The translations under genes were made by a program, and so were the position numbers. From Ranitomeya imitator (lineage: Eukaryota), in assembly GCF_032444005.1 (NCBI RefSeq), contig NC_091286.1, positions 50,096,001 through 50,160,000 on the forward strand: a DNA stretch of 64,000 nt, read 5' to 3'. The first letter of the stretch is position 1; each line of letters begins with the position of its first letter. The notes under the pieces were generated by a model. It saw only the letters and a program-made list of their open reading frames with translations. It was not told where the DNA came from and did not search any database. Shown here one piece after another: positions 440-49,440 of the stretch.

Positions 440-1976
440 CCGTATATACTCGAGTATAAGCCGACCCGAGTATAAGCCGACCCCCCCTAATTTTGCCACA
501 AAAAACTGGGAAAACTTAATGACTCGAGTATAAGCCTAGGGTGGGAAATGCAGCAGCTACTGGTAAATTTCAAAAATAAAAATAGATACCAATAAAAGTA
601 AAATTAATTGAGACATCAGTAAGTTGTGTTTTGAATATCCATATTGTATCAGGAGCCCCATATAATGCTCCATACAGTTTATGATGGGCTGCATAAGATG
701 CTCCATAGAGATATTTGCCCCATATAATGCTGCACATAGCTCCATAAGATGCTCCATACAGATAATTGCCCCATATAATGCTGCACATGGCCCCGTAAGA
801 TGCTCCATACAGATAATTTCCCCATATAATGCTGCACATGGCCCCATAAGATGCTCCATACAGATAATTGCCCCATATAATGCTGCACATGGCCCCATAA
901 GATGCTCCATACAGATAATTTCCCCATATAATGCTGCACATGGCCCCATAAGATGCTCCATACAGATAATTGCCCCATATAATGCTGCACATGGCCCCAT
1001 AAGATGCTCCATACAGATAATTGCCCCATATAATGCTGCACATGGCCCCATAAGATGCCCCATACAGATATTTGCCCCATATAATGCTGCACATAGCTCC
1101 ATAAGATGCTCCATACAGATAATTGCCCCATATAATGCTGCACATGGCCCCATAAGATGCTCCATACAGATAATTTCCCCATATAATGCTGCACATGGCC
1201 CCATAAGATGCTCCATACAGATAATTTCCCCATATAATGCTGCACATGGCCCCATAAGATGCCCCATACAGATATTTGCCCCCATATAATGCTGCACGTG
1301 GCCCCATAAGATGCTCCATACTGATAATTGCCCCAAAAAAAGCTACACATGGCCCCATACAGATATTTGCCCCATATAATGCTGCACCTGGCCACATAGA
1401 TATTTGCCCCATATAATGCTGCACATGGCCACATAAGAAGCTCCATACAAGTATTTGCCCCCATATATACACTGCACATGGCCCCATAAGATGCTCCATA
1501 CAGACATTTGCCCCATATGCTGTTGCTGCGATTAAAAAAATTACATACTCACCTCTCAGGCCCCTGGCACTTGCTATATTCACCTGCTCCGTGTTCAACC
1601 GACGACCGTCGCTGTGTCTTCCCATCTTCTGCTTTGACGTTCAGGCAGAGGGAATCGTGCACTAATCGCGTCATCGCACCCTCTGCTCTGAGCATCAGTG
1701 CAGAGGAAGCGAATATGGACCCCACCCCTATGGGAGTGGGGTCCATTTTCATTACTGTAATGAGCGGTACCATGTGACTGCTCACTACAGGAAGAAGCTG
1801 CCGGCGCCAGGGAAAAGATGTGCAGGAACCGCACCAGGAGCAGGTGAGTATTATTACACAGATCCGCTCCCCCTCCCCTGCCGACCCCTGGGTATGACTC
1901 GAGTATAAGCCGAGAGGGTTACATTCAGCTCAAAAAAGTGGGCTGAAAATCTCGGCTTGTGCTTGAGTATATACGG
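440..1976. mobile_element. Tc1/mariner-superfamily (pogo/Tigger-like) MITE carrying a minisatellite and a CpG core
   Basis: TA (438-439) CCGTATATACTCGAGTATAAGCCG ... CGGCTTGTGCTTGAGTATATACGG TA (1977-1978): terminal inverted repeats plus TA duplication. Confidence 0.8.
697..1520. repeat. 51-bp minisatellite (about 15 units)
   Basis: Unit GATGCTCCATACAGATAATTGCCCCATATAATGCTGCACATGGCCCCATAA; explains the 17-aa periodic ORFs. Confidence 0.95.
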
Positions 1977-5187: not shown

Positions 5188-5424
5188 TTGTCTACTGTAG
5201 CGAATCAGATGGCTCCAAATGACAACGAAATAATTCAGGTTGATGGCACCGGGGATACGTCCTCTGATGAAGAGTTAGGAGCGGTGAGAGATATTGATGA
5301 GAACGAGTTCCTGGGTATTATTGACACTGAAGATCTGAAGGCGCTGGAAGATGATTCTGGATCTAACGATTCCACCAGTAATAGCAGCGATGATGAGGAT
5401 CCGGAGATTGACGTGATTGAGGAG
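5188..5424 (+). CDS. GTF2A1L: GTF2A1L (ALF) third-last coding exon: taspase cleavage motif and acidic region
   Basis: Poly-T tract + AG acceptor (5186-87), GT donor (5425). Translation ...EIIQVDGTGDTSSDEELGAVRDIDENEFLGII...SNSSDDEDPEIDVIEE matches ALF as I recall it. QVDG taspase-1 site at 5236-5247. Phase 0 joins in frame to the next exon. Confidence 0.92.
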
Positions 5425-6407
5425 GTACGGCACATGATACTACAGCGCTGTATTCAGGTACACTTGGATTGTTGCTCCTAAGTCTCACCTGCGGATTATA
5501 ATCTAATGCCGCTAGGCAGCTCGTGGGTCTACAGCTCCATGCATTTGCCAAAGAACACATGTAAGTATAACTGCAGGATCAGATTACACACTGGGTTTAT
5601 TTTTAAGCCTGAAATCATGAAGTCCATAAATCTACTCAGGAGCTTGATATGCAAATGTATAGAATAACTTGATTTAATCGAGGCCTTATGCATTGTTGCT
5701 TCACTTTTTGAGTCTAGATGAAGGTCAAGTGCGTACATGAGGAATAACACTACTTCCTTTTATTATGTGACTCATATCCTGCGTTTTCACTATGCATGCA
5801 CAATACAGAATTGTCTTTTCTTGAGCTACTGGATGGAGACTAGTTGCTATGATATATCTCATACACACCAAATACATAAATAATGGATTCCTACTCTCAT
5901 GACAGAAGGAACGGCCTGAAGGATGTTTTACTGTAGTGCTGCTGACCAGTGTAACTGTGAATCCTGCATTGGGATGGGTTAAAACATTTACTAGCAAGCA
6001 GCAACAATATCTCTGTGCAACCATTTACTCCAGCCATCTCCCCTACTACCTGTCGCTCTGTCCATACATGTATGTAGGAGGCATCAAGTGTATGGAGTTC
6101 TGGGTATGGATTTTATCAGCAGGTATGCTCAGTACGGGAGGCAGAAGAAAGGTAAAAATATGTTTTGTTTTTTTTAAAAGAAAATTTAAGAGCAGGATTT
6201 TCCACTATTTTTTATGTGCGTGCAACTTTCAAAGACAAGTCCAGCAATACCTTTACATGGCCAGTCCATTTCTGAGAAATCAGTGTTTGAATTGACTGAG
6301 GAGCTATGGTAGATCTTAAGCCTCTGTCACTCCAGCTCTATTCCCCACCCAGCGATGCCACCTTCTGCATGACTGACAGCTGCTTTGCCTGATGTCACAC
6401 AGCATAA

Positions 6408-7399
6408 GGCCTGTTTCACACGTCAGTGTCTCCGGTACGTGAGGTGACCGTTTCCTCACGTACCGGAGACACTGACACACGTAGACACATAAAAATCAAT
6501 GCATCTGTGCAGATGTCATTGATTTTTTTGCGGACCGTATCTCCGTGTGCCAAACACTGAGACATGTCAGTGTTCGTGGGTGCGCACGTATTACACGGAC
6601 CCATTAAAGTCAATGGGTCCGTGTAAAACACGTACCGCACACGGACGTTGTCCGTGTGCAGTCCGTGTGCCGTGCAGGAGACAGCGCTACATTAAGCGCT
6701 GTCCCCCCCCACTGGTGCTGAAGCCGCGATTCATATCTTCCCTGCAGCAGTGTTTGCTGCAGAGAAGATATGAATAATAGTGTTTAAAATAAAGATCTAT
6801 GTGCCCCCCGCCCTCCCACCCCCTGTGCGGCCCCCCGCTGTTCTGAAAATACTCACCCAGCTCCCTCGTTGGCTGTCGCTTCTTCCTGTTCTGGCCGCAT
6901 CTTCTCCTGTATGTGGTCACGTGGGGCCGCTCATTTACAGTAATGAATATGCGGCTCCACCTCCCATAGGGGTGGAGCCGCATATTCATTACTGTAATCA
7001 GCGGCCCCACGTGACCGCATACAGGAGAAGATGCGGCCAGAACAGGAAGCAGCGCCGGCGAGGGAGCGAGTCGGGTGAGTATTTTCAGAACAGCGGGGGG
7101 CGCACAGGGGCTGGGAGGGCGCTGGGCACATAGATCTTTATTTTAAACACTATTATTCATATCTTCTCTGCAGCAAACACTGCTGCAGGGAAGATATGAA
7201 TCGCGGCTTCAGCACCAGATGCTGGTACGTGTGGTACCCAGCACGGTGCGTGTGGTACCCAGTGGGCACATGGGCGGCACACGTGTGCTGCACGTGTGCC
7301 ACACTGATGTGCCACAGAAATGTAGGGGCACACGGACACGGATAATTCCGGTACCGATTTTTTCCGGTACTGGAATTATCTGGACGTGTGAAACCGGCC
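6408..7399. mobile_element. PIF/Harbinger-like (Tourist-type) MITE inserted in a T2-like MITE
   Basis: TAA|GGCCTGTTTCACACGTC...GACGTGTGAAACCGGCC|TAA; 3-bp TAA duplication. The host repeat CACACAGCA(TAA)AGGCTGTC is rejoined when it is removed. Confidence 0.85.
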
Positions 7400-8847
7400 T
7401 AAAGGCTGTCAGTCAAACAGGAGGAGGTGGTGGTTCTGGTCAAGCAATAGAGCTGGAGTGACAGAGGCTTCAGATCTACAAATAATTTTCAGCCTCTTGC
7501 ATATCAAATCAAGCACTGATTTATCACTAGACTTACCATGTAAATGTATATTGTTGGGCTTGTCTTGAAGGAGCTACATACACATACAAATAGCTTGGGG
7601 GTAAAATCCTGATGACAATTCCCTTTAAGTGGTGATATTTATTTTTCGCTATGAAATTATATTACATAGTTGCCCATTTTCACTTGTAATATGGATTTAT
7701 TTAACAAAAAAAAAAAAGTTAATTTCTTACCAGGTACTCATGCTGAAGCACAACTGTTTTTTTTAATCCCAGCTGATTAACCCTTTACATTGCATAGCAA
7801 AAAAAATAAATTCTGCAACTACGGTTGAAGTATAAGCTCTGTACATTAATTTATTTTAGTACCTTATTCATCAAGTTACCTTTAATCCCATTGTCGAGTT
7901 TCTTCTACATGAACAGATATTTTTCTTCTTTTCTTACCTCTCGTCATTGGCTGCTGGCTTCCGAGTATTTAATTATTATTAATTATGCAGCGACCAATTC
8001 CTCCAGTTCTTTTTCATCTATAATAGGAGCACCGGGTGCTAATGTTTAATGTGTTTTATTTTTTAATAAGCTGCTGATTTAGAGTAGCACTTTAATACCT
8101 TTCCTTTCATTTGATTCTTTATAGCCAATTGCTGTCATGCTAACACATCTTAAGGAATCAATTAAACTGATGGATTTTATGCCGCTAGATAAGTCTCCGT
8201 GTAATAAAGGGCCCACATGTCCTAGTCTGCTGCAAACGTCTCCTGTTCGGAGATTCCAGTTCGGAGTTGTCACGCAGCGGAAATTATTGGTGCCGTTTAA
8301 TGAGACGAAATTAAAGAGTGAATTGTTTAGACGCCTGTCTGGATTTCCAAAAGTCTTCTAAAAAAGATTGAGGGGGAATATTACACTATAAAGTTATCCT
8401 GGGAGTCCATATCAAATCACGTGAACTGTTAGAAAAAAAATATAAAGTTACGGGAGGAGTTGCATATACCATGCGGCAACATAACTATTTATTTTTGAAC
8501 ATGAAATACAAGAAATAGGCAAAACATTTAAATATAAAGGAACCCCCATACCTGGAAATCAATGAGGGCACACCAACTTCTTAGACCCACACCTACCCGA
8601 TATTTTTCTACAGGAATATGCCATAAATGTCTATCATTAGACAACCCCTTTAACATCGTCCTCTGCTTATATCGAATAAATAGCTTGCAACATTTTTTTT
8701 TTCCCCTGTATAGGATGATTGTGCCTTTTTAGTGAAAATCTTGACATTGTGGAGCCTCTGTGTTAGTGATTTTCAGTAAAAAGTGGCACATTTCTAAAGT
8801 GAGATTTGGAATTCTGCTGTTACCTTGTGTACATAACTGCAGCTTAA

Positions 8848-10450: not shown

Positions 10451-13103
10451 GCCCTTCATGACCCAGCCTATTTTGACCTTAATGACCTGTCCATTTTTTG
10501 CAATTCTGACCAGTGTCCCTTTATGAGTTAATAACTCAGGAACGCTTCAACGGATCCTAGCAATTCTGAGATTGATTTTTTTCGTGACATATTGGGCTTC
10601 ATGTTAGTGGTAAATTTAGGTCGATAATTTTAAATTTCACAATTTTCAAATTTTGAATTTTTATTCTGTTAAACGAGAGAGTTATGTGACACAAAATAGT
10701 TAATAAATAGCATTACCCACATGTCTACTTTACATCAGCACAATTTTGGAAACAACATTTTTTTTGCTAGGAAGTTATAAGGGTTAAAATTTGACCAGCG
10801 ATTTCCCATTTTTACAACAAAATTTACAAAAGCATTTTTTTTATAGGGACCACCTCACATTTGAAGTCAGTTTGAGGGGTCTATATGGCTGAAAATACCC
10901 CAAAGTGACACCATTCTAAAAAGTGAACCCCTCAAGGTACTCAAAACCACATTCAAGAAGTTTATTAACCCCTCAGGTGCTTCACAGCAGAAAAGCAACA
11001 TGGAAGGAAAAAATAAACATTTAACTTTTTAGTCAAAAAAATTATCTTTTGGCAACAATTTTATTTTCCTAAGGGTAAAAGGAGAAACTGGACCCCAAAA
11101 GTTATTGTACAATTTGGCCGTATTATGCATATACCCCATATGTGGGGGTGGGGGGGAGGAAACCACTGTTTGGGCGCACGACAGGGCTCGGAAGGGAAGG
11201 AGCACTATTTGACTTTTTGAATGAAAAATTGGCTCCAATTTCCTTTAGCGGACACCATGTCACGTTTGGAGAGCTCCTGTGTGCCTAAAGATTGTAGCTC
11301 CCCCACAAGTGATCCCATTTTGGAAACTAGACCCCCCAAGGAACTTATCTAGATGCATAGTGAGCACTTTGAACCCCCAGGTGCTTCACAAACTGATCCG
11401 TAAAAATGAAAAAGTACTTTTTTTTTTTCACAAAAAATTTATTTTAGCCTCAATTTGTTCATTTTCACATGGGCAACAGAATAAAATGGATCCTAAAATT
11501 TGTTGGCCAATTTCTCCTGAGTACACGATACCTCACATGTGGGGGTAAACCACTGTTTGGGCACACGGCAGGGCTCGGAAGGGAAGTAGTGACGTTTTGA
11601 AATGCAGACTTTGATGGAATGGTCTGCGGGTGTCACGTTGCCTTTGCAGAGCCGTTGATGTGCCTAAACAGTAGAAACCCCTCACAAGTGACCGCATTTT
11701 TGAAAATAGACCCCCCAAGGAACTTATCTAGATATGTGGTGAGCACTTTGAACCCCCAAGTGCTTCACAGAAGTTTATAACAGCCATGAAAATAAAAAAT
11801 AATTTTGTTTCCCCACAAAAATAATTTTTTAGCCCCCATTTTTTTTTTTTTTCCCAAAGGTAACAGGAGAAATTAGACCCCCAAAGTTGTTGAGTATGCT
11901 TATGCCCCACTGTTTGGGCGCACGTCGGGGCTCGGAAGGTAGGGAGCACCATTTGACTTTTTGAACGGAAGATTGGCTGGAATCAATGGTGGCGCCATGT
12001 CGCGTTTGGAGACTCCTGATGTGCCTAAACAGTGGAAACCCCTCAATTTTAACTCCAACAGTAACCCCAACACACCCCTAACCCTAATCCCAACTCTAGC
12101 CATAACTCTAATTGCAACCCTAACCCCAACACCCCTAATCCCAACCATAACCCTAACCACAAGCCTAACCCTAACCCCAACACACCCCTAACCCTAATCT
12201 TAACCCTATTTCCAACCCATAACCCTAGTTCCAACCCTAACTCTAATTCCAACCCTAAGGCTATGTGCCCACGTTGCGGATTCGTGTGAGGATTTTTCCG
12301 CACCGTTTTTGAAAAATCCGCAGGTTGTAAAAGGCACTGCTCCCGCAAGCGCCGGTCAATCTGAATGGCCAGAGACATAGAATCACTCAGACCGGAAGGC
12401 GTGGGAAACCCCACCATAACATCTTTAACGGATTCAGAAAGACCCTTTTTGAAAATTGCCGCCAAAGCATCATCATTCCATTTAGTCAACACAGACCATT
12501 TTCTGAATTTCTGACAATACAATTCTGCCGCCTCTTGACCCTGAGACAGGGCCAACAAGGTCTTCTCAGCTTGATCCACAGAATTAGGTTCATCATATAA
12601 CAATTTCCAGTGTTTTTTGTACAGATTTCACCTGCGGATTCCTATTGAGGAACAGGTGTAAAATGCTGCGTAACCTGCACAAAGAATTGAGATGCTGCGG
12701 AAAATACAGCGCCGCGTTTCTGCGCTGTATTTTCCGCACCATGGGCACAGCGGATTTGGTGTTCCATAGGTTTACATGGTACTGTAAACGTGATGGAAAA
12801 CTGCTACGAATCTGCAGCGGCCAATAGGCTGCGGATCCACAGCCAAATCCGCACCATGTGCACATAGCCTATTTCTAACCCTAATTCTAACCCTAACCAC
12901 AACCCTAACCCTAATTGCAACTGTAACCCTAATTCTAACCCTAATTGCAACCCTATCGCTAATTGCAACCCTAACCCTAGTTCTAACCCTAGTGGAAAAA
13001 TAAAAGTAAATATATGTTCTTTATTTTATGTTCCTTACCTATGGGGGTGATAAAGGGGGGGGGGGGGTATTTACTTTTTTTATTTTGATCACTGTGATAG
13101 GTT
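10451..13103 (+). mobile_element. Large non-autonomous piggyBac-like element, right part lost
   Basis: TTAA|(C>G)CCCTTCATGACCCAGCCTATTTTG start; same family as 17868 and 24604-29983. Contains about 390-bp subrepeats, CCCTAA tracts and nested Harbinger-like MITEs. Confidence 0.75.
12341..12602 (-). mobile_element. Isolated Ty3/Gypsy gag fragment inserted as filler
   Basis: Translates LYDEPNSVDQAEKTLLALSQGQEAAELYCQKFRKW...WNDDALAAIFKKGLSESVKD...LAIQIDRRLRE (retrotransposon gag domain); no LTR. Confidence 0.85.
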
Positions 13104-22057: not shown

Positions 22058-23013
22058 GGGTATGTTCACACGTTCCTGATTTCCATCCTTTTTTTTTCAG
22101 GACTGTTTTTTAAAAAACTGCAGCTCTTGGCAGAAAACGCAGGTCCTTTTTTTGGTCCTTTTTTGGTCCTTTTTTGATGCGTTTTTTGATGCAGTTTTCT
22201 AGCCAGAGTCTGTGTGTTTTCTAGGAATTTTTTTTAGGGTTAAAATGGCTGAAAATACCCTAACCCTACCCCTAACCCTACCCCTAACCCTAACCCTATT
22301 CTAACCTTAGTGAAAAAAAAAAAAAAAATTATTTTTTTTATTGTCCCTACCTATGGGGGTGACAAAGGGGGGGGGGGGTCATTTACTATTTTTTTTATTT
22401 TGATCACTGAGATAGGTTATATCTCAGTGATCAAAATGCACTTTGTAACGAATCTGCCGGCCGGCAGATTCGGCGGGCGCACTGCGCATGCGCCCGCCAT
22501 TTTGCAAGACGGCGGCGCCCAGGGAGAAGACGGCCGGACGGACACCGGGAGGCCGGGTAAGTATAAGGGGGGGAGATTAGAGCACGGGGGTGACATCGGA
22601 GCACGGGGGAGGGGCATCGGAGCATGGGGGGGTGGGATCGGGGCAGCCACACTCCACCCACGCACTTCCGCCCGCTTCCCCGCACTTCCTGCTGCAGCGG
22701 TTCTGCACCACGAACCGCAATAAAACCCGCAGATCTATTTTTGATCTGCGGGTTTTACTGCGGGTTTCACCTCACAATGGAGGTCTATGGGTGCAGAACC
22801 GCTGCTGTTTTACAAAAAGAAGTGACATGGTACTTCTTTTTTACCGCAGCTAATCAGTGCGGTTTTTTTTTTTCAATTCAGGACCATGTGCACAGTGGGT
22901 CCTGTTTTCCATAGGGTACAGTGTACTGTACCCTGCATGGAAAACAGCCGCGGAACCGCAGCGGCAAAACCGCTGCGTTTCCGCGGTAAAAAACGCACTG
23001 TGTGAACATGGCC
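22058..23013 (+). mobile_element. Composite Harbinger-like MITE with captured CCCTAA/YY1 module
   Basis: GGGTATGTTCACAC...GTGTGAACATGGCC|TAA; near-identical copy at 43670-44677. Confidence 0.8.
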
Positions 23014-24603: not shown

Positions 24604-27600
24604 CCCCTTCCCGACCCATGACGCCACGTAGGCGTCATGAAAGTCGGTGCCATTCCGACCCATGACGCCTATGCGGCGTCATGGAAAGATCGCGTCCCTG
24701 CAGATCGGGTGAAAGGGTTAACTCCCATTTCACCCGATCTGCAGGGACAGGGGGAGTGGTAGTTTAGCCCAGGGGGGGTGGCTTCACCCCCTCGTGGCTA
24801 CGATCGCTCTGATTGGCTGTTGAAAGTGAAACTGCCAATCAGAGCGATTTGTAATATTTCACCTATTATAACGGGTGAAATATTACAATCCAGCCATGGC
24901 CGATGCTGAAATATCATCGGCCATGGCTGGAAATACTAGTGTGCCCCCACCCCACCGATCGCCCCCCCAGCCCTCCGATCTGGCCGATACACTGCTCCGG
25001 CTCCCCTCCGTCCAGTGCTCCGCTCCCCCCCGTGCTCTTGTCCGCTCCCCCCGTGCTCCAATCACCCCCCTGCACTCCGATCCACCCCCCCGGTGCTCCG
25101 TTCCAGCCCCCCCGTGCTCCATTCCAGCCCCCCCGTGCTCCGTTCCACGCCCCCCGTGCTCCGTTCCACGCCCCCCGTGCTCCGATCCCCCCCCCCCCCC
25201 CCCGTGTTCCCCCCCCACCCCATCATACTTACTGATCCAGCCGGGGTCCCGTCCGTCTTCTCCCCGGGCGCCGCCATCTTCCAAAATGGCGGGCGCATAC
25301 GCAGTGCGCCCGCCGAATCTGCCAGCCGGCAGATTCGTTCCAAAGTGCATTTTGATCACTGAGATAGATTATATCTCAGTGATCAAAATAAAAAAAATAA
25401 TAAATGACCCCCCCCCCCTTTGTCACCCCCATAGGTAGGGACAATAAAAAAATAAAGACATTTTTTTTTCCCACTAATGTTAGAATAGGGTTAGGGGTAG
25501 GGTTAGGGGTAGGGCTAGGGTTAGGGTTTCGGTATGTGCAGACGTATTCTGGTCCTCTGCGGATTTTTCCGCTGCGGATTTGATAAATCCGCAGTGCTAA
25601 ACCGCTGCGGATTTATGGCGGATTTACCACGGTTTTTCTGCGCATTTCACTGCGGTTTTACAACTGCGATTTTCTATTTGAGCAGTTGTAAAACCGCTGC
25701 GGAATCCACACAAAGAAGTGACATGCTGCGGAATGTAAACCGCTGCGTTTCCGTGCAGTTTTTCCGCAGCATGGGCACAGCGATTTTTGTTTCCCGTAGG
25801 TTTACATTGAACTGTAAACTCATGGGAAACTGCTGCGGATCCGCAGCGTTTTCCGCAGCGTGTGCACATACCTTTAGAATTAGGCTATGTGCACACGGTG
25901 CGGATTTGGCTGCGGATCCGCAGCAGTGTTCAATCAGGTTTACAGTACCATGTAAACATATGAAAAACCAAATCCGCTGTGCCCATGGTGCGGAAAATAC
26001 CGCGCGGAAACGCTGCGTTGTATTTTCCGCAGCATGTCAATTCTTTGTGCGGATTCCGCAGCGAATTACACCTGTTCCTCAATAGGAATCCGCAGGTGAA
26101 ATCCGCACAAAAAACACTGGAAATCTGCGGAAAATCCGCAGGTAAAACGCAGTGCCTTTTACCCGCGGATTTTTCAAAAATGGTGCGAAAATATCTCACA
26201 CGAATCCGCAACGTGGGCACATAGCCTTAGGGTTAGGGTTGGAATTAGGGTTGTGGTTATGGTTAGGGGTGTGTTGGGGTTAGGGTTGTGGTTAGGGGTG
26301 TGTTGCGGTTAGGGTTGTGTTTAGGGTTATGGCTACAGTTGGGATTAGGGTTAGGGGTGTGTTGGGGTTAGTGTTGGAGGTAGAATTGAGGGGTTACCAC
26401 TGTTTAGGCACATCAGGGGTCTCCAAACGCAACATGGCGCCACCATTGATTCCAGCCAATCTCGTATTCAAAAAGTCAAATGGTGCTCCCTCACTTCCGA
26501 GCCCTGACGTGTGCCCAAACAGTGGTTTACCCCCACATATGGGGTACCAGCATACTCAGGACAAACTGCGCAACAATTACTGGGGTCCAATTTCTCCTGT
26601 TACCCTTGTGAATCAAAAAAAATGCTTGCTAAAACATAATTTTTGAGGAAAGAAAAATGATTTTTTATTTTCACGGCTCTGCGTTGTAAATGTCTGTGAA
26701 GCACTTGGGGGTTCAAAGTGCTCACCACATATCTAGATAAGTTCCTTGGGGGGTCTAATGTCTAAAATGGGGTCACTTGTGGGGGTTTCTACTGTTTAGG
26801 CACACCAGGGGCTCTGCAAACGCAACGTGACACCCGCAGACCATTCCATCAAAGTCTGCATTTCAAAAGTCACTACTTCCCTTCTGAGCCCCGACGTGTG
26901 CCCAAACAGTGGTTTACCCCCACTCATGGGGTATCAGCGTACTCAGGAGAAACTGGACAACAACTTTTGGGGTCCAATTTCTCCTGTAACCCTTGGGAAA
27001 ATAAAAAATTCTGGGCTAAATAATTATTTTTGAGGAAAGAAAACGTATTTATTATTTTCACGGCTCTGCATTATAAACTTCTATGAAGCACTTGGGGGTT
27101 CAAAGTGCTCACCACACATCTAGATAAGTTCCTTTCGGGGTCTAGTTTCCAAAATGGGGTCACTTATGGGGGGTTTCTACTGTTTAGGCACATCAGGGGC
27201 TCTGCAAACGCAACGTGACGCCCGCAGAGCATTCCATCAAAGTCTGCATTTCAAAACGTCACTACTTCAATTCCAAGCCCCGGCATGTGCCCAAACAGTA
27301 GTTTACCCCCACATATGGGGTATCACCGTACTCAGGAGAAACGACAACAAACCTTGGGGTCAAATTTCTCCTGTTACCCTTGGGAAAATTAAAAAATTCT
27401 GGGCTAAATAATTATTTTTGAGGAAAGAAAACGTATTTATTATTTTCACGGCTCTGCATTATAAACTTCTATGAAGCGCTTGGGGGTTCAAAGTGCTCAC
27501 CACACATCTAGATAAGTTCCTTTCGGGGTCTAGTTTCCAAAATGCGGTCACTTGTGGGGGGTTTCTACTGTTAAGCCACATCAGGGGCTCTGCAAACGCA

Positions 27601-29983
27601 ACGTGACGCCCACAGAGCATTCCATCAAAGTCTGCATTTCAAAACGTCACTACTTCACTTCCGAGCCCCGGCATGTGCCCAAACAGTGATTTACCCCCAC
27701 ATATGGGGTATCATCGTACTCAGGAGAAACTGGACAACAACTTTTGGGGTCCAATTTCTCCTGTTACCCTTGGGAAAATAAAAAATTGCAGGCTAAAAGA
27801 TCATTTTTGAGAAAATAATTTTTTTTTTTTTTCATGGCTCTGCGTTATAAACTTCTGTGAAGCACTTGGGGGTTCAAAGTCCTCACCACACATCTAGATT
27901 AGTTCCTTTGGGGGTCTAGTTTCCAAAATGGTGTCATTTCTGGGGGATCTCCAATGTTTAGGCACACAGGGGCTCTCCAAACGTGACATGGTGTCCGCTA
28001 ATGATTGGAGCTAATTTTCCATTTAAAAAGCCAAATGACGTGCCATCCCTTCCGAGCCCTGCCGTGCGCCCAAACAGTGGTTTACCCCCACATATGGGGT
28101 ATCTGCATACTCAGGACAAACAGGACAACAATATTTGGGGTCCAATTTCTCCTATTATCCTTGGCAAAATAGGAAATTCCAGGCTAAAAAATCATTTTTG
28201 AGGAAAGAAAAATTATTTTTTATTTTCATGGCTCTGCGTTATAAACTTCTGTGAAGCACCTGGGGGTTTAAAGTGCTCAATATGCATCTAGATAAGTTCC
28301 TTGGGGGGTCTAGTTTCCAAAATGGGGTCACTTGTGGGGGAGCTCCAATGTTTAGGCACACAGGGGCTCTCCAAACGCGACATGGTGTCCGCTAACAATT
28401 GGAGCTAATTTTCCATTCAAAAAGTCAAATGGCGCGCCTTCCCTTCCGAGCCCTGCCGAGTGCCCAAACAGTGGTTTACCCCCACATATGAGGTATCGAC
28501 GTACTCGGGAGAAATTGCCCAACAAATTTTATGATCCATTTTACCCTACTGCCCATGTGAAAATGAAAAAATTGAGGCGAAAAGAATTTTTTTGTGGAAA
28601 AAAAGTACTTTTTCATTTTTACAGATCAATTTGTGAAGCACCTGAGGGTTTAAAGTGCTCACTAGGCATCTAAATAAGTTCCTTGGGGGGTCTAGTTTCC
28701 AAAATGGGGTCACTTGTGGGGGAGCGCCAATGTTTAGGCACACAGGAGCTCTCCAAACGCGACATGGTGTCCGCTAACGATGGAAATAATTTTTCATTCA
28801 AAAAGTCAAATGGCGCTCCTTCCCTTCCGAGCCTTACCATGTGCCCAAACAGTGGTTTACCCCCACATGTGAGGTATTGGTGTACTCAGGAGAAATTGCC
28901 CAACACATTTTAGGATCCATTTTATCCTGTTGCCCATGTGAAAATGAAAAAATTGAGGCTAAAAGAATTTTTTTGTGAAAAAAAGTACTTTTTCATTTTT
29001 ACGGATCAATTTGTGAAGCACCTGGGGGTTCAAAGTGCTCACTATGCATCTAGATAAGTTCCTTGGGGCGTCTAGTTTCCAAAATGGGGTCACTTGTGGG
29101 GGAGCTCCAATTTTTAGGCACACGGGGGCTCTCCAAACGTGACATGGTGTCCGCTAAAGAGTGGAGCCAATTTTTGATTCAAAAAGTCAAATGGCGCTCC
29201 TTCCCTTCCAAGCCCTGCCGTGCGCCCAAACAGTGGTTTACCCCCACATATGAGGTATCAGCGTACTCAGGACAAATTGGACAACAACTTTCGTGGTTCA
29301 GTTTCTCCTTTTACCATTGGGAAAATCAAAAAATTGTTGCTAAAAGATAATTTTTGTGACTAAAAAGTTAAATGTTCATTTTTTCCTTCCATGTTGCTTC
29401 TGCTGCTGTGAAGCACCTGAAGGGTTAATAAACTTCTTGAATGTGGTTTTGAGTACCTTGAGGGGTGCAGTTTTTAGAATGGTGTCACTTTTGGGTATTT
29501 TCAGCCATATAGACCCCTCAAACTGACTTCAAATGTGAGGTGGTCCCTAAAAAAAATGGTTTTGTAAATTTCGTTGTAAAAATGACAAATCGCTGGTCAA
29601 ATTTTAACCCTTATAACTTCCTAACAAAAAAAAATTTTGTTTCCAAAATTGTGCTGATGTAAAGTAAACATGTGGGAAATGTTATTTATTAACTATTTTG
29701 TGTCACATATCTCTCTGGTTTAACAGAATAAAAATTCAAAATGTGAAAATTGCGAAAGTTTCAAAATTTTCGCCAAATTTCCGTTTTTATCACAAATAAA
29801 CGCAGAATTTATTGACCTAAATTTACCACTAACATGAAGCCCAATATGTCACGAAAAAACAATCTCAGAACCGCTAGGATCCGTTGAAGCGTTCCTGAGT
29901 TATTACCTCATAAAGGGACACTGGTCAGAATTGCAAAAAACGGCAAGGTCTTTAAGGTCAAAATAGGCTGGGTCATGAAGGGG
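24604..29983 (-). mobile_element. Complete 5.4-kb non-autonomous piggyBac-like element nested at an internal TTAA
   Basis: TTAA|CCCCTTCCCGACCC ... GGGTCATGAAGGGG|TTAA; terminal repeats 12/14 identical; TTAA duplication; no transposase ORF. Confidence 0.88.
26401..29310. repeat. Internal tandem array, 8 units of 380-394 bp
   Basis: TGTTTAGGCA-type anchor at 26401, 26793, 27181, 27569, 27955, 28349, 28731, 29111. Confidence 0.9.
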
Positions 29984-34410: not shown

Positions 34411-34534
34411 GTTAAGTTTAACAATCAGGACGCTGTACTAAAAATTATAGGGATATTGACTTACTTGACATTTATAGGATACTAGATGGTGGCCCGATTC
34501 TAACGCATCGGGTATTCTAGAATATGCATGTCCA

Positions 34535-35095
34535 CATAGTATATTTCCCAGTCACGTAGTATATTGCCCAGCCACGTAGTATATTGCCCAGCCACGTATA
34601 TTGCCCAGTTACGTGGTATATTGCGCAGTCACGTATACAGCACAGAGCCATGTAGTATATTGCCCAGCGACGTATTCAGCACAGAGCCACGTAGTTTGTT
34701 GCCCAGTCAAGCAGTATATTGCCCAGCCACGTAGTATATTGCCCAGTCACATAGTATATAGCCCAGCCACGTAGTATATTGCCCAGCTACGTAGTATATT
34801 GCCCAGCCACGTAGTATATTGCCCAGCTATGTAGTATATTGCCCAGTTACGTAGTATATTGCGCAGTCACATAGTATACAGCACAGAGCCATGTAGTATA
34901 TTGCCCAGTCATGTAGTATATTGCCCAGTCACGTATATTGCCCAGCGATGTAGTATGTTGCCCAGTCAAGTAGTATATTGCCCAGCCACGTAGTATTTTG
35001 CCCAGCCACGTAGTATTCAGCACAGAGCCACGTAGTATATTGCCCAGTCACGTAGTATATTGGCCAGTCACGTAGGTATATAACACTGCCCACGC
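34535..35095. repeat. About 20-bp minisatellite inside Helitron
   Basis: Unit GTAGTATATTGCCCAGCCAC. Confidence 0.9.
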
Positions 35096-35524
35096 AGTAT
35101 TTAGCAGTATGTGCACCATATCCCTGTTAAAAAAAAAAAAAATTAAAATAAAAAATAGTTATATACTCACCCCTGGGATCTAGCGAAGCTGTGTGATGCG
35201 GCCGCCATCTTCCGTTCCCAAGATGCATTGCAAAATTACCCAGATGACTTGGCGGTCTCGGGAGACCGCTAAGTCTTCTGGGTAAGTTTGCAATGCATCT
35301 CTGGGAACGGAAGATGGCGGCCGGTGCGAGTGCATCGTCCGACGACAGAAGGTGAGAATAGTAGAATTGTTTTTTTATTTTTAACATTACATCTTTTTAC
35401 TATTGATGCTGCATAGGCGGCATCAATAGTAAAAACTTGGTCACACAGGGTTAATAGCAGCGGATACCGAGTGCGTTACCGCTGGCATTAACCCTGTGTG
35501 AGTGGTGACTGGAGGGGATGATGG

Positions 35525-36495
35525 AGCGGGCACCGGGGACACTGCGGGGAGTGGGGAGTACGGAGCTCGTGCCGGGGACACTGCGGGGAGTATGGAGTGG
35601 AGCGCCGGGGACACTGCGGGGAGTATGGAGCGGGCGCCGGGGACACTGACTGCGGGGAGTATGGAGCGGGCACCGGGGACACTGACTGCGGGAAGTGGGG
35701 AGTACGGAGCTCGTGCCGGGGACACTGACTGCGGGGAGTATGGAGCAGAGCACCGGGGACACTGACTGCGGGGAGTATGGAGCGGAGGGCCAGGGACACT
35801 GACTGTGGGGAGCATGGAGCGGAGCGCCAGGGACACTGACTGCGGGGAGTATGGAGCAGAGCACCGGGGACACTGCGGGAAGTGGGGAGTACGGAGCTCG
35901 TGCCGGGGACACTGACTGCGGGGAGTATGGAGTGGAGCGCCGGGGACACTGCGGGGAGTATGGAGCGGGCGCCGGGGACACTGACTGCGGGGAGTATGGA
36001 GCAGAGCACCGGGCACACTGACTGCAGGGAGTATGGAGTGGAGCGCCAGGGACACTGACTGCGGGGAGTATGGAGCAGAGCACTGGGGACACTGACTGTG
36101 GGGAGCATGGAGCAGAGCACCGGGCACACTGACTGCAGGGAGTATGGAGTGGAGCGCCAGGGACACTGACTGCGGGGAGTATGGAGCAGAGCACCGGGGA
36201 CACTGACTGCGGGGAGTATGGAGCGGAGCGCCAGGGACACTGACTGTGGGGAGCATGGAGCAGAGCACCGGGCACACTGACTGCAGGGAGTATGGAGTGG
36301 AGCGCCAGGGACACTGACTGCGGGGAGTATGGAGCAGAGCACTGGGGACACTGACTGCGGGGAGTATGGAGCGGAGCGCCAGGGACACTGACTGTGGGGA
36401 GCATGGAGCAGAGCACCGGGGACACTGACTGCGGGGAGTATGGAGTGGAGCGCCAGGGACACTGACTGCGGGGAGTATGGAGCGGGCGGCGGGCA
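35525..36495. repeat. 37-bp G-rich minisatellite inside Helitron
   Basis: Unit GCGGGGAGTATGGAGCAGAGCACCGGGGACACTGACT. Confidence 0.93.
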
Positions 36496-37773
36496 CTGTG
36501 ACTGTAGGGGAAGGAGTAATCGGACTGTGCCTGTCGCTGATTGGTCGCGGCAGCCATGACAGGCAGCTGCCGAGACCAATCAGTGACGCGGGATTTCTGT
36601 TACGGAAGTTGAGGACAGAAAGACGGAAGTACCTCTTAGACAATTATATGTATATATAGAATGAAAGTATATTCAATAATTGTATGATCGATATAAATTC
36701 TGCTTACAGGACTGTTATTGCCACCAATCTGCACTTCAATGATACGTTCACAGGTTTTTCATAAGAGTTTATAAATCGCTTCTGCTTCTAAATCCTCATA
36801 AAAAAAGTGTCAAATACTCTTTTGAATACATTTTCAACTGATTTTAATGGGAAAAGCTCCTATAGTGCAGGAAGTGCTATTTTTCACATAATTTTTGAAA
36901 TTTCCCAGTAAAACTAGTAGGAAGCATATTCAAAGAGTATTTGAAGCGTTTTTTTTAATGTGGATTTTTAGTAAAATCCGCTTCTTAATCCTCGTTGAAC
37001 TGAATAGGCCCTAAAGAGGAAGAGGTCATGTATCCAGATGGCTCTCTACACTAGATCAAGGGTTTGCGCACAACTCCCATAATCTACAGTGGAGTCACAG
37101 GTTTGGAAAGCCACCTGTCCAATTCACATACTGCTTCCTGGAGATCTCGGTGGTTGACTAGACGCCATTATCCTTATGCATCAAGAGATGTCTACGCAAT
37201 CCACCATTGGACTTGTCAGTCCCTGACCCCTAGGCTGGATTTTTCTGTCCATATGGTTGGGGGCCTGCAGATAATGGTGTTGCGTGCTGCAGGTTGTGCA
37301 CCCCTACTGTACAGGGTGTTGCAGTGTATAGCGGAATTGCATTTCTCCTATGAAGGCCATCCTGTGCCTGGGCTTCACAGGAGGATAGTGGGCCTGTCTG
37401 GCATGATAACCCATTGGTTCTTTGCATCCGTTACTGTTGGCACCAACCATATGTGACATGGGCGCGAAGGAATTGAGAAGTTTACATGCGATGATTTTAA
37501 CTTGGGACTGGGCATAATTTTACTTCTCACAACTTTTTTGGGGTTAAGCCTTTTGTATCTATTGGGAAGCGCTGCCATCTATGTCCCAAGACAGAATGCC
37601 CCGTAGTGCATATGAGGTCCCTTTCAGGTGGTTAATGAACATGTCAACAGCAGCATGTTGTATCTTGTAACTTCTTTTAACGGCCTCAGGCTTCAAAAGC
37701 CGTGAGGTAGCTCAAAGAAGGGCTATGGCGATTCTTTAGGCACCTTCCACATGAAAGCCCAGACTATTATATA

Positions 37774-38281
37774 TCTATATATATAATTGTCTAAGGGTTT
37801 TTCCGTCTGTCTGTCTGTCCTGGAAATCCCGCGTCTCTGATTGGTCGAGGCTGCCAGGCCTCGACCAATCAGCGACGGGCACAGCGACGATGATGTCATA
37901 AAGGACGTAGACATCCCGCGTCTCTGATTGCTCGAGGCCGCCAGGCCTCGACCAATCAGCGACGGGCACAGCGCCGATAATGTCATAAAGGACGTAGACA
38001 TCCCGCGTCTCTAATTGGTCGAGGCCGCCAGGCACAGCATCGACGTAGAAATCCCGCGCCTCTGATTGGTCGAGGCCGCCAGGCCTCAACCAATCAGCGA
38101 CGGGCACAGCGACGATAATGTCATAATGGTTGCCATGGCGACGATAATGTCATAAAGGTTGCCTCGACCAATCAGCGACGGGCACAGTCTGCCGTGAATT
38201 CTGGAATCATCATTGTCCATATACTACGGGGACATGCATATTCTAGAATACCCGATGCGTTAGAATCGGGCCACAGTCTAG
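37774..38281 (+). mobile_element. Non-autonomous Helitron
   Basis: A|TCTATATATATAATTGTC... 5' end; 3' hairpin CCCGAT-GCGTTAGA-ATCGGG then CTAG|T; inserted between A and T with no duplication. Confidence 0.88.
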
Positions 38282-39090
38282 TATATTATATACACACATA
38301 TATAATATATTAGACACATAATGACAGCAGTAGAGGCGGCATAAAAATGCTGAAAAAGGACACTGAAGTGTCTTCTGCTTCCATAACGATGCAAATATGC
38401 CGATGACTGTAAGACGTCTTGTGCACATAGTCTTGCACCAATTTAAAAACCACCTACAGTCAGATATGATTTTTTTTCCTACTTGTGCGCATCCTTATTC
38501 TCAGAAGATTAAAGCAGATCTGTCACCAGATTTCACAATAAAAACTGCATTCATTACTAACTAGATCTCTGAGATGTGATGATGGGGCTGATTAGCATTT
38601 TCCAGGGCCGCATGTCTTGATTGTGAAGCTTCTGTGTGTCCCTCCTCACACTGCTCAGTACCATCTGCAGCTGTCACTCCATTATTATCTTATCAGAATA
38701 AGGACACAACATGTGCAATGGAGTACACAGTTTACTAATGATAAAGCATTGCATCACAGGTATCGCCAGATTTCACGGTATAAACTGCATCCATTATTAA
38801 ACAGATCTGTTAGCCCTTACTAACAAAAGCAACAAAAATCAGATTGGCTATATAGAGTCCAATGTAACAATGAGAGCTCATGAGTCCAAGTGTATTCAGT
38901 CTCTGCCTATCCAGCCCTTCTGTCAGCTGCAGCTTGTACTGAGCAGTGTGATATCGCAGCAGGGAGGAGGGACACTGAGATGTCAATCTGGATTCAACAT
39001 CAGTCTCGATAATGTCACCTTTGACTTTTTGTCATTTATATTCGGTTATGAATCTGACACACGTTTAATGTTAAGTATCCGATGCCTGAA

Positions 39091-39418: not shown

Positions 39419-40550
39419 TCAAGTGTCCGTACATGCCGGTTTGTCTTTTATGCTCAAGTATTGGGGATCAAAGGTGGTAAGGTGCAGATCAGCCCTGGAT
39501 GCCTTTTTTGGTCCGGTGTATACGCTGTCGGTCTTGCAGTTGGAGGTATAGGCTGTGAAATTACTGACTCTGTAAAGTTCCGCTTGAGCCTTGCAGCAAC
39601 CGAACTTGCTCATGAGCAGGAAGAAATCTCTCCGGAACGCTTTGGTAAAGATTGCATATAGGAATGGGTTAGCGCAGGAATTCACGGGGTAGAACAAGAC
39701 CAGCAATATTTTGGAATTGGTCACGGTAATAAGTGGAACTTTAAAGGCTGCGGAAATGGCGAAGAATGAAATTGGCGCCATGCATGTAAAATCGGTGAAG
39801 ATGAGCACCGCCATTTTTTTAGCTATTGTGGTGTCTTTGTTGGTCGGCGTGAACTCTGGATTTTGGACGGCGATGTAGATTTTGATGTAACAGGCGCATA
39901 TGATAATGAAGGCTATGACATTGAGCACCAATATGATGATTATGTATGCCTGTGAAAGAGGCGTTTCTATGTCCATGGGCAGGCATATACTGACTTTAAT
40001 GTAATTGCTTACGCCAACAAGAGGCAGAAGAGCAATGAGTAGCGAAAAAATCCAGCCTCCGAGCATTATCAAAATTGCGTGTCTTAACCGGAGCTTACGG
40101 TCAAGTTGCATTGCATAGGTGATCGTATGCCATCTCTCAAGGGTTATCACAGTGAGAGTGTACACCGACAGCTCACTGGCAAATACCGTGAAGAATCCAG
40201 CCGCGCTGCAGCCGCTCCCGGTCTGCCAGTCAATAGCATGGTTATAGTACTGACTTTTAGTCTTGGAGTCAACCGATGCGATCAGCAGTAGATAAATCCC
40301 CATGCAAAAGTCTGCGAACGACAGGTTGCACATCAGAAAGCGAGGAACGGTGAACTTGTAATGACTTGTCAGCAGGACTAAAAGAACCACGGCATTTCCT
40401 GCAATAGCAAGTATGCTAATAAACCAGATCAGGACTCGAAGGAAATTGTAGCCCACGATGTCCTCGCAAGGGTTAAAGGCATCTGGCTCTGGGTTACATT
40501 TCAGGGTTCTCGGCTTAAAAAATTCTTCATAGTCCATCGTCAGTTCCATA
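39419..40550 (-). CDS. LHCGR: LHCGR terminal exon (exon 11 equivalent): end of hinge, 7TM domain and C-tail
   Basis: Acceptor TTTTTTTCAG at 40551-60, phase 2. DYEE...[83 protein letters not shown] and the C-tail are LHCGR-type rather than FSHR/TSHR-type. Confidence 0.96.
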
Positions 40551-40788
40551 CTGAAAAAAACAAAACAATATGTTGTCAATTACAATCGATATAACAAAAT
40601 TTTGTATATTCAGTTGCAAAAAATTATTCATTCTCCATTGCAAATTAGGATTATAAGGCCGGCATCACACTAGCGTGTTTTACGGACATATGAGCGGCGC
40701 AGAAAATATGCATTGCACACGGTACATTGATTCTCTATGGCCCAGCTCCTACCTTGCGTATTTTACGCAACCGTATTATACAGTCTTG

Positions 40789-43186
40789 GGCCGGCGTCAC
40801 ACTAGGCGTAAGTAAATACGGTCTGTTTTTTACGGCCGTAATACGAAGTAATTGTCCTAAAATACTGTTCCGTATTCAATGCGAGGATGCGATTTTTACG
40901 CACAAATTTATCCGTATGTAATCCGTATGGCTTCCGGACGGCGATTTTTTTTCACGCAGGCTTGCAAAATGGACATATCATGGATCCATCGGCTCAAATA
41001 TTCTTAAAAACATATATACAGTTATATATATATATATATATATAATGTCAGTGAGACACATATATATATATTTATATTTAATTCAGTGCTAGATAGCAGA
41101 AAAGCCGGTAATTCAATTGCCGGCTTTTCCTATCTCCTTCACAAACCCGACATGATATGAGACATGGCTTACATACAGTAAACCGTCTCATATCTCTTCT
41201 TTTGTTACATATTCCTCTTTAGTAATGTAAGAAGTGTCTTTGTGTCAAATTTGGGGTCTCTAGCTATTAAATTAAAGGGTTAAATCCCGGAAAAAATTGG
41301 CGTGGTCTCCCGTGCAATTTTCTCCGCCAGAGTGGGAAAGCCAGTGACTGAGGGCAGATATTATTAGCCTAGAGAGGGACCATGGTTATTGCCCCCCCCC
41401 TGGCCAAAAACATCTGCCCCTAGCCACCCCAGAAAAGGCACATCTGTAAGATGCGCCTATTCTGGCACTTAGCCTCTCTCTTCCCATTCCCGTGTAGCAG
41501 TGGGATATGGGGTAATAAAGGGTTAATGTCACCTTGCTATTGTAAGGTGACATTAAGCCCGGTTAATAATGGAGAGGCGTCAATTATGACACCTATCCAT
41601 TATTAATCCAATAGTACGAAATGGTTAATAAAACACACACACATTATTAAAAAGTATTTGAATGAAATACAGACACATGGTGTTTTAATATTTTATTATA
41701 CTCTTAATCCACCTGAAGACCCTTGTCACCTGAAATAAAGTTAAAAAAACAAACAATATTCCATACCTTCCGTCGTTCAGTCTTGTCCCACGCTGTAAAT
41801 CCATCTGAAGGGGTTAAATCATTTTACACCCAGGGGCTCTGCTAATGCATCTGTGCTCCTGACTGTAAAATCTGGGGAATGAATGGAAAGCAGGGTAATG
41901 TAGCTACCTACTGTAGACTTGCGGTGCTGCGCCCCCTGCTGGTATAAACTCATATGAACTCGAGCGTGAGAAAATATTCAGAAAAATTCACACGCTCGAG
42001 TTCATCTGAGGTTATGCCAGCAGGGGGCGTAGCACCGCAAGTCTAGATAGCTACGTTTCCCTGCTTTCCATTCATTCCCCAGATTTTACAGTCAGGAGCA
42101 CAGCTGCATTAGCAGAGCTCCTGGGTGTAAAATGATTTGACCCCTTCAGATGGATTTACAGCGTGGGACAAGACTGAACGATGGAAGGTATGGGATATTG
42201 TTGTTTTTTTATTTTAACTTTGTTTCAGGTGACAAGGGTCTTCAATTGGATTGAGAGTATGATAAACTATTAAAACACGATGTGTCTTTATTTCAATAAA
42301 ATACTTTTTTCATAATGTGTGTGTTTTAGTAACCATTTACTACTATTGGATTAATAATGGATAGGTATCTTATTGACGCCTCTCCATTATTAACCTGGCT
42401 TAATGTCACCTTACAATAGCAAGGTGACATTAACCCTTTATTACCCCATATCCCACCGCTACACGGGAGTTGGAAGAGAGAGGCTAAGTGCCAGAATAGG
42501 CACATCTTACAGATGTGGCATTTCTGGGGTGGCTGGGGGCAGATGTTTTTAGCCGGGGGGGGGGGGGGGGTCCTATAACTATGCTCCCTCTCTAGGCTAT
42601 AAAATATCTGCCCTCAGTCACTGGCTTTCACACTATGGCGGAGAAAATTGCACGGGAGCCCACGCCAGTTTTTTCCGCGATTTAACCCTTTATTTTAACA
42701 GCTAGAGCCCCCAAATTTTGCACACACACACTCGGAACATTAGTAGTGAGGATTATGCAAAAAAAGGGATATGAAAAGGTTTACTGTATGTAGACCATGT
42801 CTCATATCCTGTCGGGTTTGGGAAGGAGATAGCAAAAGCCGGCAATTGAATTACTGGCTTTTCTGCTATCTAGCGCTGTATGAAATATATATATATACGT
42901 GTCTCACTGACATATATATATATGTATGTATGTATGTATATAGACTGTATATACGTTTTCACAAATATTTGAGCCCATGGATCCATTGTATGTCCGTTTT
43001 GCAAGCCGGCGAGAAAATCTCGCTGTACGGATGCCATACGGATTACATACGGAGGATGACATGCGCAAAATATGCTGCCACACCCTGACTACGGATGACA
43101 TACGGATCACTATTTTGGGAACATTTCTGTGTATTACGGCCATAAAAAACGGACCGTATTTTCATACGCCTAGTGTGACGCCGGCC
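40789..43186. mobile_element. 2.4-kb fold-back Harbinger-like MITE
   Basis: GGCCGGCGTCACACTAGGCG...CGCCTAGTGTGACGCCGGCC|TTA; arms are homologous up to the centre near 41975. A partial second left end lies at 40657-40787. Confidence 0.85.
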
Positions 43187-43478
43187 TTAGTTAAATTGTA
43201 ACACTTTTTGCTGTTTGCAATTAAAAAAATTTTTAAAACAAGAACAATTTAAAGGGAACCTGGCAGCAGGATTTCACCGCCTAATTATTTATATGTTCAT
43301 GTAACTCTTTGAAAGACAAGTCCAGCAATACCCCTACCTAGAAAATCCGTTCCTCCATTCCAAATCAGCACTTGTATTGCTATACAGTTAAAGCAATGGT
43401 AGATCTGAAGCCTCTGTCACTCCAGCTCTATTCCCTGCCCAGCGCCGCATTATCCTGCTGGACTTGGAGCCTCTATGC

Positions 43479-43664
43479 CAGGGGTCCCCAACTCCAGGCC
43501 TCGAGGGCCGCCAACAGTGCAGGTTTTCAGGATTTCTTTAGTATTGCATCGGTGGTTATGTGATCATCTGCACAGGTGATGATTCCAACCCCTGTGCAAT
43601 ACTAAGGAAATCCTGAAAACCTGCACTGTTGGCGGCCCTCGAGGCCTGGAGTTGGGGACCCCTG
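43479..43664. mobile_element. hAT-like palindromic MITE
   Basis: CAGGGGTCCCCAACTCCAGGCC...GGCCTGGAGTTGGGGACCCCTG with about 65-bp arms; 8-bp duplication not evident. Confidence 0.7.
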
Positions 43665-43669
43665 TCTTA

Positions 43670-46570: not shown

Positions 46571-46699
46571 CTGTGGGGGTAGAGAAGCATTATATAAGCG
46601 AACACACAATATGCTGCATTTCTATCTTACAAGGGACCAATTTAACATTTTTAAGCTTTGGTATTCATTGATTTAATGGTATAAACTAACGAGAGGGAT

Positions 46700-49381: not shown

Positions 49382-49440
49382 TATATACATACACATATTT
49401 CACCACACCTCCCTCCTTATGAACGTGCATGGGGGTTGAC

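Follow-up and report, generated by a model that had tools for sequence, protein, structure and literature searches.

Recurrence of a putative promoter, mini-exon and U1-type splice-donor cargo among non-autonomous transposons in the frog Ranitomeya imitator

Why should one extended splice-donor sequence recur inside transposons that otherwise appear unrelated? The question is raised by a stretch of 64,000 nt from Ranitomeya imitator (NC_091286.1, 50,096,001-50,160,000, forward strand; hereafter the window, whose positions serve as coordinates throughout), and above all by a palindromic segment, cassette A2, within a Harbinger-like MITE, or miniature transposable element of the inverted-repeat type, at 6407-7402. 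The original prediction for this locus held that, in non-autonomous transposons of several superfamilies, a CpG-rich palindromic core is bracketed by outward-facing, near-perfect U1 5' splice sites, a shared design mimicking a bidirectional promoter with its first exon. We favour, with somewhat better than even confidence, a reading by descent, in which one diversified cargo of promoter, ATG, mini-exon and donor would have spread among MITE families and been doubled by palindrome formation, the donor being kept in source copies while most copies are inert.

The motif in question, GGTRAGTAT, is the complement of the U1 5' end from -1 to +8. It has nine exact matches in the window, compared with 1.05 +/- 1.08 in 100 dinucleotide-preserving shuffles of the same DNA, both strands being counted. 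The matches lie in cassettes that we call A1 (1545-, 1843+), A2 (6849-, 7074+), B1 (22556+), H (35163-), B2 (44253+), C (49047-) and the hAT cassette (60756+), so that the number originally reported was correct and the places were right to within one or two bases. The plain donor GGTRAGT, by comparison, occurs exactly as often as expected (16 sites vs 15.8), while AT follows at +7/+8 in nine of those 16 sites against an expectation of 6.6% (binomial P = 2e-7): in all nine cassette sites and in none of the seven others. The entire excess is therefore one specific 9-mer, and an excess confined to AT is, as a sequence pattern, the signature of one recurring sequence rather than of a general surplus of donors. 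Since several cassettes have flanks that no longer align, the 9-mer was either kept while its surroundings diverged or reached repeatedly.

Cassette A2 is a 507-bp palindrome (6712-7218, centred near 6965) that matches its own reverse complement at 92.9% over 510 columns. Its two donors, both GGTGAGTAT and both exact matches to the 9-mer, are mirror images of one another at 6849-6857(-) and 7074-7082(+), 217 bp apart and symmetric within the palindrome. Ahead of the right donor stands the YY1/Kozak-like word AAGATGCGGCC, whose ATG opens a frame of 15 codons up to the donor (7028-7076, +); the mirror copy starts at 6903(-). Further upstream, family A cassettes have the E-box-like word CACGTGAC and a central hairpin. 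The element that holds A2 is 996 bp long, with terminal inverted repeats (TIRs) of GGCCKGTTTCACACG and TAA at both flanks, and contigs of all four sequencing runs (X1, X7, X8, X9) contain the empty-site joint 6406->7403. PIF/Harbinger MITEs are recognized by TIRs and a 3-bp TWA target duplication, and the TAA flanks, the GGCCKGTTTCACACG ends and the site found empty in other copies confirm the Harbinger-like label originally given. The MITE is in turn nested in an outer element with inverted repeats, which spans 6226 to about 7628 and has an end reading TTAAAGGG. Words of the focal element reach depths of 1.4e5-7.5e5, and those of the A2 palindrome 1.4e5-4.5e5, compared with about 9.5 in single-copy flanking DNA; word depth is not equal to copy number, and points to focal-element copies of the order of 10^4.

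Folding predicts that RNA of 6830-7101 forms a single hairpin (-257 kcal/mol, z -30.9), and in read-through RNA each A2 donor pairs with the complement of its mirror donor. Buried in this way, the A2 donors could act only in transcripts that begin inside the core. A circovirus- or geminivirus-type origin of replication was considered for the central hairpin and dropped, the nonanucleotide matching at only 5/9 bases, and ATACTYACC was likewise given up as a U1 gene's 5' end, the similarity ending after 10 bases. An Rfam scan returned nothing at gathering score and, up to E = 5, only weak hairpin-type miRNA look-alikes; neither a hammerhead ribozyme nor an snRNA was matched up to that same value, and the palindrome is not one of the Penelope-like hammerhead kind. 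An exact-pattern scan of metagenome contigs with the 19-base core word gave only three microbial chance matches.

The resemblance to the beginning of a gene extends across the window. All seven non-coding occurrences of the YY1/Kozak-like word AAGATG[GC][CG]G are followed, 41-51 nt on, by GTRAGTAT or, in one arm of H, by GTGAGAAT, and in 7/7 the reading frame from ATG to donor is open. The promoter-type words of the original prediction were all located: besides AAGATGCGGCC in A2, these are AAGATGGCGGC at 35211-, 35311+, 44203+ and 25280-, CCGGAAGTG directly ahead of 60756, and CCAAT palindromes at 36540-36590 and 37830-38180. The order and spacing of the modules are constant across cassettes, and as a likeness to promoter, start codon, tiny first exon and donor the arrangement is real, going beyond what had first been noticed. 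Mimicry of a bidirectional promoter and first exon holds in this sense, as ordered words, open frame and donor, whereas RNA contigs and CpG decay give its function no support. The description of the cores as CpG-rich is likewise true in part: they pass a CpG-island filter (GC >= 50%, observed/expected CpG >= 0.6), but modestly, with cassette ratios of 0.56-0.80 (0.56 in the hAT cassette) against 0.55 for the whole window, in which about 40 segments pass the same filter, most of them without a donor. Beyond the donors, an acceptor-like pyrimidine tract with CAG is found 27-144 nt downstream in the left arm of A1, A2 (+99/100), B1/B2 (+141/144), the left arm of H (+47) and palindrome D (+41), and AATAAA soon after it in B (+162/165) and D (+69 to +107). 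Some cassettes could thus be whole miniature transcription units, which is suggestive but not significant.

How far these cassettes are independent of one another is a separate matter. The right arm of A1 aligns with A2 (1711-1805 against 6894-7037) at about 80% identity (z = 28), and its mini-exon can be aligned in register with that of family B, in about 54 columns that end at the donor; family B itself supplies two of the matches, at 22556 and 44253, in copies that are 94% identical. A T-rich stretch after the donor unites H, C, D and A1's left arm, and the identical word AAGATGGCGGC is common to H and B. H and the hAT element have homologous 20-mer arrays on the same side of the cassette, a position in which A1 has a 51-mer array. 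The cassettes are mosaic, the right arm of A1 combining an A-type core with a B-type exon, and genome-wide contigs commonly attach this arm type, and also others, to one and the same hairpin in the centre, to judge from loose ends at 6935, 7004 and 7018. The cargo sits inside elements that have ends of their own (a TAA duplication with empty site, an 8-bp duplication, 27-nt and 72-nt TIRs), and the A core alone occurs in two carriers, a TA-flanked TIR element and the TAA-flanked Harbinger-like MITE. That several superfamilies are involved is therefore broadly right, but by these homology links the supposed shared design is largely shared descent of one cargo. After collapsing by detectable homology, at most six independent motifs are left and perhaps only three, with Poisson P of 8e-4 for six lineages and 0.09 for three; only two of the nine matches had originally been counted as copies of one element, which overstated their independence.

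Descent also bears on the paired, outward-facing arrangement. Paired donors around a palindromic core are found in A2, H and D, where the arms are alike at 93%, 92% and 89%, respectively, and where palindromy itself makes the second site a mirror image of the first. The arrangement does not extend to A1 and the hAT cassette, which are non-palindromic, or to family B, which is one-sided. The weaker partner sites previously listed are present (a slash marking the splice junction): AAG/GTGAGA at 35349+, GCA/GTGAGT at 60550-, and the pair AAG/GTATGG at 41761- and 42185+.

Anatomy, homology links, the termini of the host elements and very high copy number are all observed here, and on them we build the following account. 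The unit would consist of promoter-type words (YY1, NRF1, ETS, E-box), an ATG in Kozak/YY1 context, an open mini-exon of 9-24 codons and a donor matching U1 from +1 to +8. Most likely it derives from a Pol II gene's 5' end, the gene being either a captured host gene, as with HelibatN3 and NUBPL, or a remnant of a transposon's own gene. It would then have moved from one non-autonomous TIR transposon to another (Tc1/mariner-like, Harbinger-like, hAT-like and an unclassified TIR family), recombining along the way, and would often have been doubled by inverted duplication, a doubling that alone would give two outward donors around a palindromic core. The 9-mer was probably kept in source copies while flanks diverged, and the family B copy B3, which retains GTAAGTAT despite exon indels, is counted for such retention. 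A 9-mer kept amid diverging flanks is probably of importance to the cargo as RNA, most likely as a promoter-proximal 5' splice site that boosts and stabilizes transcripts initiated in the core. Of some 10^4 resident copies, the majority may be inert, methylated relics.

Several points weigh against this account, some on the side of homology and some on the side of function. The case for homology of A with B depends on about 50 GC-rich columns, and neither the hAT cassette nor A1's left arm has a flank that can be aligned with those of the others, so that convergence on the 9-mer may be the explanation there. The argument for constraint on the donor draws on few copies in a single window, and among 40 of 281 rows of the genome-wide variant listing no change falls in either 9-mer, a result without power. 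RNA and DNA runs were examined as contigs, which cannot reveal transcript starts, and joints and loose ends were judged among the contig rows listed, a minority of all rows. X8 and X9 are real RNA, their contigs covering just the exon at 5188-5426 of a plus-strand gene, with unaligned letters at both contig ends. Contigs of X7, X8 and X9 cover A2; one from an RNA run (X9 record 30, 6729-6889) bridges the left donor unspliced, and X7 record 12 and X9 record 31 extend past the right donor by a smaller number of letters. Among the rows listed for contigs over the A2 cassette there is no joint or loose end at a donor, and RNA/DNA depth in two cassette bins, at 0.0035-0.0038 (X8) and 0.0005-0.0006 (X9), is the same as or below that of the flanking MITE. 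The check for initiation and splicing that the original prediction called for has thus yielded, at this one locus, an unspliced bridge, no donor joint in those rows and no raised depth. As evidence against activity this is weak, consisting of contigs at one locus; activity of a few source copies is neither excluded nor supported by it. A joint between opposite strands, 6835->7067, in an X7 contig of depth 206, was rejected as a splice, having no GT-AG ends. By palindrome symmetry it corresponds to a copy without 27 nt (6836-6862), including the left donor, and it is absent from DNA run contigs; the joint is a variant copy.

Methylation was approached through CpG decay, an indirect test on few sites in which transitions are compared between arms and between copies. 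Transitions per site amount to 0.086 at CpG and 0.027 elsewhere (odds ratio 3.4, Fisher P = 2.5e-4), which suggests germline methylation of resident copies and does not describe an unmethylated island. The original prediction had named cores fully methylated in the germline as an outcome that would speak against it, and this 3.4-fold excess of CpG transitions, as an odds ratio, leans in that direction.

Other explanations can be weighed on the same evidence. That the cassettes are working bidirectional promoter and first-exon mimics, whose outward donors recruit U1 against premature polyadenylation or silencing, or splice to host exons, to the benefit of the element, agrees with the fixed-spacing order of promoter word, ATG, open mini-exon and donor, with the U1 match to +7/+8 in every cassette site and the donor retained in B3, and with the hairpin-buried donors, which are sensible only for transcripts starting inside the core; the bat element HelibatN3 is a precedent that functions likewise. 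Non-autonomous DNA transposons, however, need no transcript of their own, the unspliced contig bridge, the want of a donor joint among the rows listed and the unraised depth count weakly against it at one locus, and the excess of transitions at CpG (0.086 vs 0.027) suggests germline methylation, so we regard this as unlikely. We would give as low a probability to the bolder proposal that the cassettes are a natural activation-tagging cargo, in which selection would keep the full U1 complement, and mobile two-way promoter/first-exon units, exchanged among at least three TIR superfamilies and present in about 10^4 copies, would fire in the germline or early embryo, splicing into host exons or keeping chromatin open for transposition. 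It is doubtful, too, that a transposon gene left the cassettes behind as remnants of internal deletion, whole miniature transcription units folded back, with the donor as the first donor of that gene. The acceptor-like sites 27-144 nt past donors and the AATAAA soon after them in B and D would suit such remnants, and MITEs usually arise as deletion derivatives and one-ended fold-backs; but acceptor-like sites are common by chance, several of the 'introns' (27-47 nt) are too short for vertebrate splicing, one parental transposase gene cannot explain the same cassette in different superfamilies, and no coding remnant was seen beside any cassette.

A filter imposed by the host is a rather remote prospect. 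A U1 site in either orientation would suppress cryptic poly(A) sites in introns, letting such elements accumulate, and symmetry would amount to orientation independence. All cassettes here are indeed intronic or near genes (the exon at 5188-5426 on the plus strand, the LHCGR last exon on the minus strand), and AATAAA words lie near several donors. When palindromic copies are read through, however, their donor is concealed in a long hairpin; family B has a donor on just one side; a strong donor alone in an intron carries a risk of its own; and one window has no power for a test of orientation or location. Least probable of all, in our estimation very much so, is that chance or composition produced the pattern, or that the 9-mer is a DNA-level word, such as a binding site, unrelated to U1. 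A Poisson P of only 0.09 at three lineages and the lack of enrichment of the 7-mer would allow this, but AT stands at +7/+8 in 9/9 cassette sites and 0/7 others, the sole variable position is R at +3, exactly what U1 tolerates, the weaker partners are still donor-like, and the motif has a constant place after an ATG-headed open mini-exon.

The spread of a single cargo, which we prefer to these alternatives, is to be read against the individual cassettes and carriers. Cassette A1 (1545-1851) has its donors at 1545-1553(-) and 1843-1851(+); the right arm is that which, at 1711-1805, is about 80% like the A2 core, and the left arm differs from it, with a decayed inner donor GGTGAATAT at 1576-1590. 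The carrier is a Tc1/mariner-like TIR element of 1.5 kb (438-1978) with 27-nt inverted ends, TA at both extremities and a 51-mer array (692-1518) adjoining the cassette. The one-sided cassette B1 (22465-22564, +) comprises the NRF1-type word GCGCATGCGC, paired YY1 words, a 16-codon frame and GGTAAGTAT; B2 (44162-44261, +), 94% like it, is inside a Harbinger-like MITE (about 43671-44680) with ends of GGGTATGTTCACACG type and TTA at both flanks. B3 (25225-25324, -) is the diverged copy with exon indels, in which the G at -1 is now A and GTAAGTAT is intact; with A at -1 it is not among the exact 9-mer matches. A fixed part of the family B element consists of telomere-like CCCTAA-type arrays followed by an A-run, inside Harbinger-like MITEs. 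Such arrays are at 12076-12991, 22257-22330, 25440-25527 and 43884-43996, four copies in the window, one of them (12967-13103) without a cassette.

Cassette H (35163-35360) has GGTGAGTAT at 35163-35171(-) and GGTGAGAAT at 35351-35359(+) around a palindromic core (35199-35323) containing AAGATGGCGGCC twice. Its arms are 92-100% palindromic inside, give way to 27-nt exon stretches that are unrelated and of equal length, and become alike again at the donor. The carrier (34473-38290) was originally labelled a Helitron, which is wrong: it is a TIR transposon, with 72-nt inverted ends (34473-34544 and 38219-38290) that are 92% complementary, whereas Helitrons have no TIRs and are marked by 5' TC and 3' CTRR ends and a 3' hairpin. 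It contains a 20-mer array (34532-35081), a 37-mer array (35580-36504), CCAAT palindromes and a nested insertion at about 36650-37780. At 37826-38180 and 36523-36598 there are 87-bp units in tandem, in each of which two CCAAT boxes form a palindrome (GATTGGTCGAGGC / GCCTCGACCAATC; observed/expected CpG 1.12), a second promoter-like module within the H carrier that has no donor.

The hAT cassette (60550-60764) is non-palindromic, with GCA before GTGAGTCT at 60550(-), two ETS-type sites, CCGGAAGC and CCGGAAGTG, and ATG before GTGAGTAT at 60756(+), so that its exon ends ATG/GT. The MITE that carries it (59559-61036) has short CAGGG-type TIRs (CAGGGCCGGCTCC / GCCGGCCCTG) and an 8-bp target duplication, GAGTGATG, at both flanks, in keeping with the hAT label it had been given, and its internal 20-mer array (59643-60423) is the one homologous to the array of the H carrier. 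Tandem 31-mer arrays at 58995-59554 and 61047-61258 are one array split by this MITE and provide a clean before/after view of GAGTGATG. Cassette C (49047-49055, -) consists of GGTAAGTAT and then a T-rich stretch, its upstream side being cut off 35 nt away by the start of a Tc1-like transposase fragment; that fragment (49090-49215, +) codes for the C-terminal end of the transposase, adjoins the cassette and removes its promoter side. In palindrome D (41540-42418) the weak donors are AAG/GTATGG at 41761(-) and 42185(+); a T-rich stretch comes after each of them, then the acceptor-like CAG at +41, then AATAAA (+69 to +107).

Among neighbouring genes, the plus-strand coding exon at 5188-5426 is preceded by a pyrimidine tract with AG and followed by GAG/GTACGG, and is acidic and serine-rich; its only Pfam match is a weak one, to TFIIA alpha/beta (E 0.76). 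We assume from its position next to LHCGR that it could be a GTF2A1L-like neighbour, which is not confirmed. The X8 and X9 contigs, in covering just this exon, suggest spliced mRNA; X7 instead continues at high depth from 5226 to 6085, possibly through retention of the intron or through use of an alternative 3' end. An open frame at 39419-40579(-) has a full 7tm_1 domain (E 4e-36) and is the large last exon of an LHCGR-type receptor, so that the cassettes from 41761 to 60764 lie in its introns, on either strand. Another open frame, at 62799-63665(-), ends in a GIY-YIG nuclease domain of the kind seen in Penelope-like retroelements (E 1.3e-4, at the Pfam cut-off), and a 388-bp tandem repeat occupies 26397-29335 (7.6 copies, 85% matches).

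The closest known counterpart is HelibatN3 of Myotis bats, a Helitron whose captured cargo comprises the promoter of NUBPL, six codons and a splice donor, and which has been amplified to thousands of copies (Grabundzija et al. 2016, PMC4778049). It traps exons both in experiments and in bat transcripts (PMC4778049). Like the frog cargo, it is a non-autonomous DNA transposon with a Pol II promoter, a start followed by a few codons and a donor facing downstream. It differs in its carrier, those in the frog being TIR transposons with TA, TAA/TTA and 8-bp target duplications, and in that the frog cargo is often doubled into a palindrome pointing both ways and has a donor matching U1 through +8; the parental gene and chimeric transcripts are documented in bats, whereas the frog cargo is known from sequence alone. 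Sleeping Beauty transposons of the T2/Onc activation-tagging type, which resemble the cassettes in having a promoter and an unpaired donor within a TIR transposon, are engineered, and include acceptor/poly(A) traps that the natural frog cargo is without. Mouse oocyte MT/ORR long terminal repeats and the L1 antisense promoter give rise to chimeric host transcripts by contributing the first exon and its donor. There too a transposable element gives promoter, first exon and donor, but these are retroelements that need a promoter of their own, unlike the cut-and-paste, non-autonomous carriers in the frog, for which no transcript is needed. Introner elements are likewise DNA transposons carrying splice signals, but their donor and acceptor are at or near the ends and the whole element is removed, while the frog donors are internal, 300-900 bp inside, and face outward from the centre. 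Telescripting and the axis of U1 and polyadenylation signals (U1-PAS axis) at bidirectional promoters, reportedly the work of Almada and colleagues in 2013 and Kaida and colleagues in 2010, are alike in that a promoter-proximal U1 site downstream of the start favours productive elongation; that axis is a statistical property of host promoters, whereas the U1 sites of the frog cassettes are predictions. A literature search found no description of such cassettes in amphibian MITEs.

If the cassettes are inert, they provide a caution, namely that a motif excess across 'unrelated' transposons can stem from one mobile cargo doubled by palindrome formation. If they are active, tens of thousands of mobile promoter and donor units could create new first exons and chimeric transcripts on landing, and would be a natural large-scale counterpart of the bat Helitron and NUBPL, achieved via cut-and-paste elements and in both directions. 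In that event they would also constitute a natural test of what a promoter-proximal U1 site contributes to transcript survival.

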